Shown: piece after piece, positions 1 to 11,391 of the stretch
How positions within the stretch are numbered: the first letter of the stretch is position 1
How the letters are laid out: each line of letters starts with the position of its first letter
NCBI GenBank assembly: GCA_054661495.1
Contig: BAAFSQ010000301.1
Location: 1-12,010 of the forward strand
Reading direction: 5' to 3'
Origin: Zygophlyctis sp. KS116
Taxonomy: Eukaryota > Fungi > Chytridiomycota
DNA: 12,010 nt
Translations under genes and position numbers: made by a program
The notes under the pieces: generated by a model
Seen by the model: the letters and a program-made list of their open reading frames with translations, nothing else
The model's database searches: none
What the model was told of the DNA's origin: nothing

Positions 1-90
1 TTGGAAGATGGCCGCACTCTCTCTGATTACAATATCCAAAAGGAATCTACTCTCCACTTGGTCTTGCGTCTACGTGGAGGTTTTAAATGA
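1..90 (+). CDS. UBI4: Ubiquitin, 3' end (probably the last repeat of polyubiquitin), partial at window edge
   Basis: Frame 1 translates LEDGRTLSDYNIQKESTLHLVLRLRGG-FK-stop, the ubiquitin C-terminus plus a 2-aa tail. A short tail is typical of the final polyubiquitin unit, and no ribosomal-protein fusion follows. The symbol is inferred because upstream repeats lie outside the window. Confidence 0.9.
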   Translation: MEDGRTLSDYNIQKESTLHLVLRLRGGFK

Positions 91-114
91 GATGGATTTA
101 CAATTGTGTAGCAA

Positions 115-120
115 AATAAA
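115..120 (+). terminator. Candidate polyadenylation signal AATAAA of the ubiquitin gene
   Basis: AATAAA begins 25 nt after the ubiquitin stop, in the 59-nt spacer. The AT-rich background weakens this. Confidence 0.35.
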
Positions 121-149
121 ATGTGAACCTTGACCTTGGAATTTTTTGA

Positions 150-6423: not shown

Positions 6424-7007
6424 ATGAAATATCTCATTGTTTTAGACATTAATGGAACTTTATGTTGTAGAATCAAAAAGCGAGAAAGAAAACTAGTGAA
6501 TTCCAATCCTTTTGCTCCAGCATATAGCACAATGATCAATGGAGCATGGATTTATCTTCGACCTTTTCTAAAGGAATTCATAAAAGACTTGAATTTTGCA
6601 CAAGTTGGACTATGGAGCAGTATGACTGAACCAAATACCCACCTATTTCACAAAGTAGCACTACAGGGTCTGAACCCATTGTTTACTTTTGATCGATCGC
6701 ATTGTTCTAATGTCAAGGATGGAAAAAATCATGAATCTACTAAAGATTTATCAACCATTTACTCTATTTTTCCTGAATTCTCTGCTGACAATACAATCAT
6801 GATTGATGATTCAGTCGAGAAATTTGTAAATCTTGAAAATATACTACTCATTCCAGAATACTCTGTAATTGATGGGGATTCTAGTCAAGATCAAGGTATT
6901 TTATTTCTCTAAAATTAGTTTTACAAAGGCTTTCGCAGTATTTAAAAAATCTAGTTTATTCCGGATTAACCGTCCCTCAATTCTTGAAGTTAAACAAGTT
7001 TGAATGA
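6424..7007 (+). CDS. NIF/FCP1-like HAD-superfamily phosphatase-domain protein, 186 aa, 2 exons
   Basis: MKYLIVLDINGTL (HAD motif I), IYLRPFLKEFI, VGLWSS, FDRSHC, KDLSTI and NTIMIDDS (motif IV). Intron 6896-6918 extends the frame to DQVLQRLSQYL...KLNKFE-stop (TGA 7005-7007). Spliced length 561 nt. Confidence 0.8.
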
Positions 7008-8625
7008 TTTTTTTATTATTAAGTAGAGTATTTTCAGCTTTATTGAGTCCAATTCAAGACTGCGATGGTATTTTCATTGTCTAATTCATAGAAGTTTACA
7101 ACTATTGGGAGCCGACGCATTACCTTCAATACGGTTATGGAATGCAGACTTGGGAGTATTCTCCAAAATATGTAATTGGATTAAACTTTAATTATAGGCG
7201 ATTAGAAGTTGGGCATACATTTGGGTTTATTTAAGTATTTTAAAAGTCTTGGGTTATTTTGGATTGAAGAAAATTGCTCAGTTTTATGGACTACGAATTA
7301 TTATAAGCGTAACTAGTGGTCTAGTGGAATGTGCATTCGTACATGCAATTGAAAAAGCATATAATAAGTCTGTTGCTAAATATTTGAAAATTATGTTGAT
7401 TTTTTCTCCTGGAATGTTTATTGCTGCACCGGCATTTTTGCCCTCAAGTTGGGCAATGGTTTTTGTAACTTGGGCATCTCTGGCTTGGTTCAAACAAGAC
7501 TCTGCATACCAGATATTTCAGGTTGTCGGAGGTTTAGGGGTAGGTTCACTGTTGGGATGGCCATTTGCAGCTGCTTTAGGACTCCCCTTTCTAGTCAAAT
7601 GTATTTTTAATTCTAAATTCTTACAAATATTCATGGCAGCTATTTTTTCCCTTGTTATTATTATGGTATATTATTTTTGTTAATCTTAGGTTCCAATTTT
7701 CTTTGTGGATTATACATATTATGAAAAAATTACAATTGTACCTTTAAATATCCTGATATATAATTTATTTAACTCTCATGGAGGACCTTCATTGTATGGA
7801 ACTGAGCCTTGGAATTTCTACTTGAAGAATGGTTTCCTTAATTTCAATATTGGAATAATTTTTGCTTTTGCTAGTATTCCTCTTGCATTATTAAAATCAA
7901 AACGAACACCTCTGTTCCACCTGATTCATTTTTATCTATGGTTTACTATATTTTCACTTCAACCACACAAGGAAGAAAGGTTTTTCTATGTTGTATATCC
8001 GCTAATTTGCTTTAATGCAAGCATTGGACTGTTTTATGCTTCAAGGCTATTGGACACTAAATGGTGGAAATCCTTGGTGGTCCGATCATTCTTTACAATT
8101 TTCATTCTATTAGCTGTTTCAAGAATATCAGCGCTTATTATATATTATAGAGCGCCCTTGGTACTTTATCAAAATTTAAATCATGATTTGACTACAATCT
8201 CTTACTCTCGTGAAGTAAACATTTGTGTTGGTTCAGAATGGTACAGATTTCCTTCTCATTACTTCCTACCTCTTGGAAGCAGACTTCGATTTATTAAATC
8301 TGATTTTGATGGTCAATTACCCAAATATTTCAAGGAAAACATCCCACATTTTAATGGTACCCTTCACCTCAAAGACTATGGCAGAATGCTTACTTCATCA
8401 AAAAGAATGACACATACAATTCCTCTAGGAATGAATGATATGAATCATCAGGATTCTTCTTCTATTTTCTCTGGGAAGTGTGATTTTATAATCTCGTTGG
8501 AGCCTGTAGAGTTACAAAATTGTGTTAGGTTCCTGGTTGGAAGTTCTAACCCTGGAGTCGGCAAGTCTTTTTTCTACTCTTTGAAAGGATTAAATTGGAG
8601 CTTTTATTGTTACCAAAAATTGTGA
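7004..8625 (+). CDS. ALG9: Dol-P-Man alpha-1,2-mannosyltransferase (GT22), 515 aa, 4 exons
   Basis: Spliced motifs IQDCDEVYNYWEP, QTWEYSPKYAIRSWAY, AFLPSS, GWPF, LYGTEPW, QPHKEERF, CVGSEWYRFPSHYFLP and FDGQLPKYF. Introns 7068-7091, 7172-7197, 7666-7689; spliced length 1548 nt. An in-frame TGA (7001-7003) sits immediately before the ATG. Confidence 0.93.
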
Positions 8626-8626
8626 A

Positions 8627-11391
8627 ATGGTAGTTTTTATTTTTTTTAAGATTTGAGGAAGATAGCCGTTCAAATATTTTCTATGCGCAGACCCCGCGTT
8701 CTCATTCATTGTTTTCTATTCTTGTAAATACGCTTAAAGGAGGAAGGAAGTCGCCAGAGGCTAAATCAAAGAGCTGCAGCGAATTGGAGTTTTGGAAAAT
8801 GGATTTAGTTGAATCGGGGGAAAAAGTAAAATTCAAACTAGAAACAATTGCATCCAAATTGGCTGAAGAAAATGTATTTTTATTTGGAGCTAGAAAATTG
8901 AAGGGAAATGATTCATTGAAAGACAAAATTCTTGAATCTGAAGGGAAAATCGCTTGCCTGAATAAAGCTCTGCTAAAGTATCAAGGACTAGCAGTTTTGG
9001 ATCAACGGATCATCCATAATCGTTCTTTTAGAAAGAAAACTCAAACATTTTCAGGAAGAATTACTCTTAAACTACTCTCATGCTTGGATGTTTTGAGGAA
9101 AATATCTGCAAATTCTGAAATATTTATGGTGGTCAAAGTTGATGGGACTAAGAAAGCCCAGAGCAGTTTCACAAGAGGCAAATGGGATGAAGAGATTATT
9201 CTTGATGTTGATAAGGCTTTGGAATTAGAATTCCTGATTTTAGAAAAGAATGGAAGTGTTCTAGCAATGATATGGTTCACTTTTAGAATGCTTATTGAGG
9301 ATATAGAAAGATATTTTATTCATAAAGGGATTCTCTCAAAACGGTTAGAGCAAACCAAGGACTCATTGTCTTCTCCAATAGGTATATTATCACGGAGAAA
9401 TGATCATTTGGAATGTGTATTTGAGCTGGAACCTGCAGGTAAAATCCACGTAAATATTTCTCTAGGTTAGTTCATATTTTTTAAAATTAGAGTCCAATTT
9501 GTCAAGTCCTCAAACGGTATAATGTGTTTGATAATTTTAAGGTGAATCAATCATTATCCAGACAGAGGCCTGTTCAGAAGATCATTTTGAAACACGGGCA
9601 TAAGTTTACTCCAAAAAGATTTTATCAAATCAAAAAGTGTGCTGCCTGCCGTGAATTTTTACTGGCTGGGAAAGGATTTTCCTGCTCAAGTATCTTGAAT
9701 TTTAGTTTATATTATAGGCTGCAATTATTTATCCCATAAAAAATGTATGAATAGAGTGATCACATTCTGCTTAAAAGAATCGTTTTGTGATAAGGTACTT
9801 TTTAATTCATGTATTGGTAGGAAGAAAACGATTTAATATCTTCATTTAAACACAGAATACCTCATCGGTTTGAAAATATACAAAATTCACTTTTTGTCGG
9901 CTGGTGCTGTCATTGCGGTCAAATAATTACTCCTATTTCAGGCAAAGTTGCAGTAAGATGCACTGAATGTGATACCATCTGTCATCTAAAATGTGCTAAG
10001 TTAGTGCCCCATTTTTGTGGCTTATCACTGACTCTTTTAGATCAGTTTCGCTCTGCTGTTGAATTAAGTGAAAAAAATAAGAAATTGAATGGTGGAATAT
10101 TAAATGTAAGATCTTAAATTTAAACTCATCATCAGGATCTTGATTTTGCAGGGTCAAAAGTATTGCAGCCGAAAGAAGATGCCAATTCATCCAATCCAAA
10201 TACTGAAAATATTGGGTTAGAGGACTTTAACTTATTCGCTGTGCTGGGGAAAGGAAATTTTGGAAAAGTATATGCTTTTAGCTAATAGAAAAGGTCATGC
10301 TGGTCGAGCTTAAAAGTACCAAAGAGCTATTTGCGATGAAAGTTCTCAAAAAAGATTTTATTGTTGAGAATGATGAAGTTGAAGGGTGGATTACTATTTT
10401 TAATATTCTAGGACTAAATGTGAGAAAAGAGTATTTTTGACAGCAAATAAGGAGCGCTTCCCCTTTTTGGTGAACTTACACTCATGTTTTCAGACAGAAT
10501 CACGCCTCTACTTTGTAATGGAGTTTGTTTCAGGGGGTGATCTTATGTGGCATATACAGCGCCAAAAGTTCTCAGAGCGTCGGGCAAAATTCTACGCTGT
10601 CGAAATTTTGCTGGCTTTAGAATATCTTCATAAAAATACTATATTATATAGGTATATTTTTTTGATCTTATTTTATCCAGAGATTTGAAACTGGATAATA
10701 TTTTGCTTTCAGCAGATGGGCATATTAAAATTGCTGATTACGGACTTTGTAAAGAAAACATGTTTTACGGTGCTACTACTAATACTTTTTGTGGTACAGG
10801 AGTAATTGCAATAACGATTAGGAACTCCGGAATTTATGGCACCAGAAATTTTATTAGAAAACCCATACGGAAGATCTGTTGATTGGTGGGCGTATGGAGT
10901 TCTTTTGTACGAAATGATCTTGGGGCAGGTTCGTTATATAAAAATTAATATAGTAGTCTCCCTTTAAAGGTAGTGATGAAGACGAAATTTTTCACTCTAT
11001 TCTTCATGATGAAATATTATACCCGATTAACCTTTCAAAAGATACAGTCTCTCTGCTTAGACAGGTAAATTTAAATCTCTTATTATCTAGCTTTTAGAGA
11101 AAAATCCACAAAAGAGACTTGGAGGTGGACCGTTAGACGCCGCAGAAATCAAATCACATGGCTTTTTTGAAGATGTTAAATGGCAGGATTTTCTTGATTT
11201 GAAAGTAATTCCTCCATTTTTCCCTATGATTGTAATTTTAAATCTCTAAACATCAGACCTCTCAAACAGACATTTCAAATTTTGATATGGAGTTTACTCG
11301 TGAACTTCCTATTTTAACTCCATGCAATTCATATTTATCCGACGTTGAACAGACCGAATTTCAGGGATTTACTTATTTTTCGAATTTTTAA
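8627..11391 (+). CDS. PKC1: Fungal-type protein kinase C (HR1, C2-like, two C1, AGC kinase), about 804 aa; 5' end uncertain
   Basis: HR1-like helix, C2-like region ending LEPAGKI, C1a (HGHKF...CAAC...CSSC...HKKC), C1b (HRIPHRF...WCCHCG...VPHFCG), kinase motifs [33 protein letters not shown], and tail motifs NFDMEFT, PILTP, FQGFTY. Introns: 8630-8657 (tentative), 9466-9490, 9517-9541, 9690-9717, 9795-9820, 10106-10135, 10268-10293, 10386-10411, 10652-10680, 10794-10821, 10929-10956, 11065-11090, 11232-11256. Alternative start is ATG 8799. Confidence 0.9.

Follow-up and report, generated by a model that had tools for sequence, protein, structure and literature searches.

How are eight genes expressed that lie on one strand of a fungal genome with hardly a nucleotide between some of them? 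The question is raised by contig C301 of the freshwater chytrid Zygophlyctis sp. KS116 (BAAFSQ010000301.1), whose whole length of 12,010 nt is the window analyzed here; the assembly comprises 12.7 Mb in 1,175 contigs. An earlier sequence-only reading had described eight co-oriented, intron-rich genes, with stop-to-ATG gaps of 59, 13, 6, 79, 97, -4 and +1 nt. This description holds. We placed eight spliced models by coordinates, translated them and searched Pfam exon by exon, and both the models and the Pfam matches agree with it; none of the eight contains an internal stop, and the run carries 40 GT-AG introns of 23-34 nt each. The same reading had left two alternatives, namely that GUT2-GPI3-TPC1 and HAD-ALG9-PKC are tricistronic units, or that promoters and polyadenylation (poly(A)) sites lie inside neighbouring coding exons. 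The tight head-to-head gene pairs of this genome and its lack of strand bias favour the second, and the unstable spacing seen in relatives disfavours the first. Thus, we consider it likely that each gene has its own promoter and its own poly(A) site, partly within neighbouring exons, and that the locus reflects extreme compaction and not an operon.

Our model suggests that RNA polymerase II would most likely transcribe each gene from its own promoter, giving each its own capped, spliced mRNA. With spacers of -7 to +25 nt, the downstream promoter, and perhaps the 5' end of the transcript, would lie within the last codons of the upstream gene, while the upstream poly(A) signal would sit on or near its own stop codon, with cleavage at or just within the next gene. 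Neighbouring mRNAs would hence overlap, and some two-gene read-through RNAs would be produced, of which the first open reading frame (ORF) alone would be translated. The loss of spacer would halt at stop/start overlaps because stop codons and ATG share letters. We infer both the positions of promoters and poly(A) sites and monocistronic translation.

Gene spacing across the genome and among relatives

A self-trained gene finder was run on 200 kb from four other contigs of the genome. It predicted 137 genes, which span 93% of the DNA, at an intron density of about 3.3 per gene. Neighbouring pairs (n=133) comprised 66 tandem, 35 convergent and 32 divergent arrangements, a tandem share of 0.50 (binomial p=1.0). 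Strand runs of length 1 to 6 numbered 37, 17, 10, 2, 2 and 3, a chance-like distribution, and the longest in the 200 kb were of 6-8 genes. Median gaps were 92 nt for tandem, 26 nt for convergent and 107 nt for divergent pairs, and gaps of at most 15 nt occurred in 6/66, 12/35 and 4/32 of them, respectively; these counts hardly shifted when the gene finder was set to split genes more readily. The array had been taken as the sign of a genome-wide expression strategy. The sample gives this claim no support: its strand runs resemble those of chance, co-orientation shows no excess (66/133), and tandem genes lie a median of 92 nt apart.

Given about 8,000 randomly oriented genes, about 31 runs of at least eight co-oriented genes are expected by chance. 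For eight genes in a row with three or four tight gaps among them, chance predicts 0.1-1.5 cases per genome, varying with the baseline for tight tandem pairs, which is uncertain at 9-16%, the gene finder at default settings fusing tight neighbours in the window. The eight-gene locus is a tail case of the distribution in a compact genome, and no clear outlier.

Head-to-head genes provide an internal control. The start codons of the Hsp70 and SAICAR synthetase genes are 18 nt apart (L029:593-610, contig C47), and both are fixed by Pfam, residues 16 and 14 corresponding to positions 1 and 2 of the respective models. The pICln/flavoprotein pair is separated by 35 nt and the CWF18/thiolase pair by at most 38 nt, also with Pfam-checked starts. 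Overall, tight head-to-head pairs (≤15 nt; 4/32) are about as frequent as tight tandem pairs (6/66). Two genes in this orientation cannot be served by one mRNA, and tiny or embedded promoters must therefore be functional in this genome. Promoters that work with almost no spacer imply, in turn, that tight tandem junctions would require no special mechanism.

Close relatives, taken from metagenome assemblies, revealed how labile these gaps are. L003, which is 65-74% identical to the window, retains the order of all eight genes, and partial gene order is kept in L004-L006, L010-L012, L035 and L036. Across the window and its relatives, the TPC1-RUD3 gap measures 79, 79, 126 (L003) and 4 nt (L005), and the RUD3-HAD gap 97, 100, 22, 11, 305, 11, 11 and 8 nt. 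HAD-ALG9 gaps are -4, -4, -1, 160, -1, 138 and -4 nt, with -1 in L003 and L006, -4 in L035 and 138-160 nt in L005 and L010. Each of these three junctions varies from tight (about 0-20 nt) to wide (about 80-305 nt). Counted from the conserved ATG, GUT2-GPI3 gaps are 25, 25 and 11 nt; GPI3-TPC1 gaps are 6 and 14 nt, and ALG9-PKC gaps +1, +1, -7, -1 and -7 nt in five sequences. One clade reverses the arrangement of the window, with HAD tight to RUD3 and distant from ALG9. The tightness of HAD switches side among relatives, and therefore the proposed tricistrons are not stable units: synteny upholds the order of the genes but not GUT2-GPI3-TPC1 and HAD-ALG9-PKC as units. The same junction, found at 300, 100, 11 or -4 nt, offers a natural series for following the move of promoters and poly(A) sites into coding sequence.

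Among named matches of the ALG9 exon, the best is in the chytrid Gorgonomyces haynaldii (39% identity), where ALG9 and the matching PKC gene are adjacent at a distance of 592 nt, and where 25 nt separate the ALG9 start from that of a head-to-head neighbour. The ALG9-PKC adjacency would seem to be old and the overlap derived. Scanning metagenomes with the HAD alignment found no further relative, a search with the ALG9 exon no spliced close relative, and a search of representatives with the PKC exon nothing usable. Two side observations concern L005 (480-520), where the TPC1 frame extends into the equivalent of the window's spacer, leaving 4 nt before RUD3, and where the word TCGAAAA, located near the RUD3 start in other species, lies inside the TPC1 coding tail. 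Close relatives also differ by intron gain or loss: additional introns are found in GPI3 and ALG9 of L003 (2846-2871, 8239-8261), which is devoid of both TPC1 introns and two RUD3 introns (window 3853-3875, 4076-4100, 5289-5316).

One relative speaks to transcription across a junction. L011 is a Logan contig of run ERR15302230, assembled from 31-letter words, and covers the last 460 RUD3 codons, an 11-nt gap and the complete HAD gene, ending 14 nt past the HAD stop. Two introns present in all genomic relatives, including the 81-84% identical kin of L011, are missing from it at exact junctions, namely that of HAD and the last one of RUD3, and L011 is probably derived from complementary DNA (cDNA). 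If so, it records continuous transcription over a tight junction, by overlap or by read-through; being an assembled contig, it fits overlapping mRNAs and a two-gene RNA alike. Multi-gene read-through RNA may well occur as a by-product. A literature search found no paper naming this run.

Junction signals and competing explanations

In the window, AATAAA occurs at 115, 6345 and 11453, and ATTAAA lies over the GPI3 stop (3741) and at 8589 for ALG9. Among 129 sampled genes, AATAAA runs across the stop codon in 12, and A(A/T)TAAA does so in 15 compared with 6.7 expected (p=0.004), a minority of genes. A(A/T)TAAA near the stop was found in about one third of genes, and at 3/8 tight and 14/56 wide tandem junctions. 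Because only a minority of genes carry a stop-proximal hexamer, and tight junctions resemble wide ones, the absence of AATAAA at tight junctions is uninformative. The earlier observation that AATAAA follows ubiquitin, RUD3 and PKC is borne out, while the argument built on tight junctions falls, GPI3 and ALG9 having ATTAAA.

Start codons are preceded by an A-rich context at -3 to -1 in the genome sample. Of 125 genes without a tight tandem neighbour, 8 have an ATG at -4 and 4 have one at -1, versus about 2/125 per downstream position, a letter bias of 4-fold and 2.6-fold, respectively. Stop codons and ATG have letters in common, and therefore ATGA and TAATG overlaps are favoured by letters alone. 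Another ATGA overlap is located at L031:6173-6176 (C47), where a 151-amino-acid (aa) ORF that matches nothing in Pfam meets a gene that looks frataxin-like by eye.

Motifs of the ACGCG type, GTGGC and motifs of the AACCCT type are more frequent in upstream regions (36/97) than in coding windows (about 8%), and the ACGCGAA class is present in 7/97 upstream regions against about 1% of the coding windows. In the window, L003 and L036, the three with a wide spacer, RUD3 is preceded at 8-18 nt by an ACGCGAA box, a candidate element that suggests a promoter internal to the run. Elsewhere, on C47, four telobox-like AACCCT(A/G) words occur in the 331-nt divergent spacer (L029:2286-2616) upstream of a ribosomal protein gene that was judged RPL20-like by eye.

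The last ALG9 codons contain a 22-nt block (8534-8555) that is almost invariant in five species, lies about 70-95 nt before the PKC ATG and is found once in the genome. It includes AACCCT, 74-79 nt before that ATG, a GGTT/AACC inverted pair and the rare Asn codon AAC (16% usage); of 22 conserved Asn sites, this is the single one fixed as AAC. The block ranks first in the synonymous-site scan of ALG9, with a permutation P of 0.13 that is not significant after look-elsewhere correction. Four of the five species, all relatives, have UGGGA in it and the window UGGAA. A possible consensus hairpin has an energy of -7 kcal/mol, a covariation term of -0.3 and z-scores of -1.7 to +1.3 relative to shuffles. 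The end of HAD, before the HAD-ALG9 junction, has no comparable element. As a lead only, the block could be an embedded promoter element or an RNA element resembling TURBS (termination upstream ribosomal binding sites). Its reading as an RNA polymerase III B-box was dropped, a key position being variable.

These data bear on four other explanations. HAD-ALG9-PKC, and GPI3-TPC1, could each be carried by one spliced bi- or tricistronic mRNA, the downstream gene being reached by termination-reinitiation aided by an RNA element within the terminal part of the upstream coding sequence (CDS). We regard this as improbable, and give no better standing to its specific version, in which two- to three-gene mRNAs of ALG9-PKC above all, and also of HAD-ALG9, use the block at 8534-8555 to guide reinitiation. 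The idea draws on the ALG9 stop and PKC start staying within 7 nt of each other in five sequences, on HAD-ALG9 gaps of -4/-1 in two clades, on the near-invariant block with its UGGGA in 4/5 species and possible hairpin, on intron-free L011 spanning RUD3 and a complete HAD gene, and on fungal viruses that exploit such overlaps (PMC10275272). However, the window has UGGAA instead of UGGGA, the hairpin and block statistics do not speak for it, HAD-ALG9 is without such an element and in L005 and L010 widens to 138-160 nt, the -4/-1 overlaps are letter-favoured, the genes are functionally unrelated, and strand bias is absent. Leaky scanning is ruled out by the 12-37 ATGs in each upstream spliced CDS. 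If true, reinitiation here would give viral TURBS a counterpart in cells and would be a rare case of cellular reinitiation after a long ORF. It is also unlikely that the mRNAs abut without overlapping, with near-zero untranslated regions (UTRs), starts 1-7 nt before the ATG and poly(A) a few nt past the stop, with overlap confined to promoter elements in the DNA. The A-rich start context, AATAAA over stops and the 18-nt head-to-head gap would suit this arrangement, which is the same design as in microsporidia (PMC2803860), but -4/+1 junctions are impossible without some overlap, and the assembly of L011 over its 11-nt gap would call for some 30 nt of overlap or of read-through, judging from the 31-letter words.

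We give very little credence to the remaining two. Operons resolved by spliced-leader (SL) trans-splicing, as in nematodes, would account for the co-oriented run, and the 59-97 nt gaps resemble nematode operon spacers, which are about 100 nt long. Against this, the genome has no strand bias, and the -4/+1 junctions are too small for a poly(A) site plus an acceptor. Acceptor-like TAG shows no excess before ATGs (0.63 per 40 nt upstream, 0.67 downstream and 0.63 on the reverse strand) and no difference between tandem (0.62) and divergent (0.65) genes; TTAG is as frequent in the 40 nt before ATGs as in 3' flanks and on the reverse strand. An Rfam search for SL2 gave no match, but its control was likewise unmatched, hence it is uninformative. 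Finally, the junctions could be GT-AG introns of 29 nt whose splicing takes out stop and start and fuses HAD to ALG9, and ALG9 to PKC, in frame. Such in-frame introns are possible in the window (6998-7026, 8622-8650), and the gene finder chose both at default settings. The donor they need is nevertheless absent or yields a stop in L003, L005, L006 and L035, which keep a separate stop and ATG, and the genes are separate in Gorgonomyces.

Several points weigh against individual promoters and poly(A) sites as well. A look for RNA runs listed none for the window, and transcript starts and ends are predicted here from DNA sequence. The ALG9-PKC gap stays at -7 to +1 nt in all five sequences, and HAD-ALG9 is at -4 to -1 nt in two distant clades; coupling would predict both. 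Known upstream motifs are absent at most tight junctions, although only about 37% of ordinary upstream regions have one, and the synonymous-site scan showed upstream genes to be under no general constraint at their 3' ends. Tight gaps make up 4/7 of those in the run compared with a baseline of about 10% (p of about 0.002-0.014 before look-elsewhere correction), a baseline made uncertain by the fusing gene finder and drawn from a sample of 200 kb only.

Gene models and contig ends

The features of the window are listed below.

Table 1. Genes and candidate signals along the window.
Position	Strand	Feature	Basis
1..90	+	(poly)ubiquitin, 3' end; contig begins inside gene; stop 88-90	PF00240
150..2173	+	GUT2-like mitochondrial glycerol-3-phosphate dehydrogenase, 601 aa, 8 introns; ubiquitin 59 nt upstream	Pfam DAO; DAO/DAO_C in relatives
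2187..3745	+	GPI3/PIG-A, 10 introns; ATG 2187 (first) or 2199 (conserved)	Pfam PIGA/Glyco_transf_4
3741..3746	+	ATTAAA on GPI3 stop; candidate poly(A) signal	hexamer search
3752..4648	+	mitochondrial carrier (TPC1-like, substrate name putative), 282 aa, 2 introns; gap 6	Pfam Mito_carr
4710..4717	.	ACGCGAA (MCB/SCB-like) box, 16-18 nt before RUD3 ATG; candidate promoter element	shared with L003, L036
4728..6326	+	RUD3-like GRAB golgin, 506 aa, 3 introns; gap 79	Pfam GRAB
6424..7007	+	HAD/NIF phosphatase, 186 aa, 1 intron (6896-6918); gap 97	Pfam NIF
7004..7007	+	ATGA, overlapping HAD stop and ALG9 start; -4	spliced models
7004..8625	+	ALG9 mannosyltransferase, 515 aa, 3 introns	Pfam Glyco_transf_22
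8534..8555	+	conserved nucleotide block in last ALG9 codons; candidate embedded cis-element	five-species comparison
8627..11391	+	protein kinase C (PKC) paralogue, 804 aa, 13 introns; gap +1	Pfam Pkinase

Two starts deserve comment. The GUT2-GPI3 gap is 13 nt with the first in-frame ATG (2187) and 25 nt with the ATG common to L003 (2199). The PKC start at 8627 requires that the first exon be nothing but the ATG and that a 28-nt intron (8630-8657) ending in GAG come next. ATG followed by GT is kept at this position in L003, L004, L005 and L006, and the acceptor is GAG in three other sequences and AAG in L006. In the window, the intron bypasses a closer AAG to end in GAG, which suggests that the acceptor is picked by intron length. 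A conserved Met-Ile-stop mini-ORF at the PKC start was rejected: it needs introns of 17-21 nt, and the minimum among 460 predicted introns is 23 nt. The PKC paralogue (window 8627-9465) is apparently without the first HR1 repeat of the Gorgonomyces gene adjacent to ALG9; a second PKC of 895 aa, on contig C1, has this repeat.

At the other end of the contig (11926-12010), the final 83 nt match sequence located at, or close to, the ends of C99, C733 and C46 with 96-98% identity, and the contig probably ends in a repeat. A repeat search of the window gave nothing above chance, and Rfam a single chance match; a scan of the window for bacterial promoters and terminators, a method not applicable to a eukaryotic locus, stayed at shuffle level. 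Elsewhere in the genome, two U1 small nuclear RNA genes with equal scores lie in tandem, 332 nt apart (G000:C548:191-680).

Comparison with known systems

The locus fails the tested features of SL operons and of algal-type polycistrons, and TURBS fails on the UGGGA core, though the stop-start spacing fits. The SL trans-spliced operons of nematodes and kinetoplastids share with it a co-oriented run of unrelated genes, but this chytrid shows neither a genome-wide strand bias nor an acceptor excess, and its spacers are too short. In green algae, the downstream gene has no promoter mark and leaky scanning is favoured (PMC7896298); short inter-ORF distances and conserved colinearity are common to both, whereas here the upstream ORFs are rich in ATGs, spacing is labile and a promoter-like box lies inside the run, before RUD3. 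Viral TURBS (caliciviruses, influenza B; CHV1, HvV190S) require a UGGGA-type core, with no more than 20 nt between stop and start (PMC10275272). The window offers such spacing (-4, +1, 6 and 13 nt), with AUGA/UAAUG overlaps and, before the ALG9 stop, a conserved stretch that has UGGGA in four relatives. The core itself, complementary to 18S expansion segment 9 (ES9), was not found upstream of the stop in the window, with UGGAA at ALG9 and nothing at HAD. Unlike the viral cases, the chytrid genes are nuclear and have introns, no structure is supported, and nothing similar marks HAD-ALG9.

By analogy, the locus seems most like the overlapping transcription of Encephalitozoon, and like agaricomycete read-through. 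In agaricomycetes, one spliced RNA may span tandem unrelated genes that are each also independently transcribed, the mean inter-ORF distance is 364 nt and the upstream ORF is without termination signals (PMC4503453). The chytrid differs in its gaps of -7 to 100 nt and in carrying A(A/T)TAAA at tight junctions no less often than at wide ones. Encephalitozoon has 5' UTRs of 1-7 nt, an own start for each gene and coexisting read-through RNAs (PMC2803860). E. cuniculi resembles the chytrid in very short spacers, unrelated neighbours and a poly(A) hexamer near or on the stop (PMC2803860), and the microsporidian type of organization is evident in a compact, 93% genic genome of unrelated, randomly oriented, nearly touching genes. 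The two differ in that the chytrid genome is intron-rich and reaches 12.7 Mb, and the CCC-like motif before the ATG is not evident in it, an A-rich context being present instead. A literature search found no paper on such packing in chytrids. Gene finders fuse such tight neighbours, which is a warning for annotators. If each gene here does keep its own promoter and poly(A) site, the locus would extend microsporidia-like packing, with signals in neighbouring coding exons, to an intron-rich chytrid genome.

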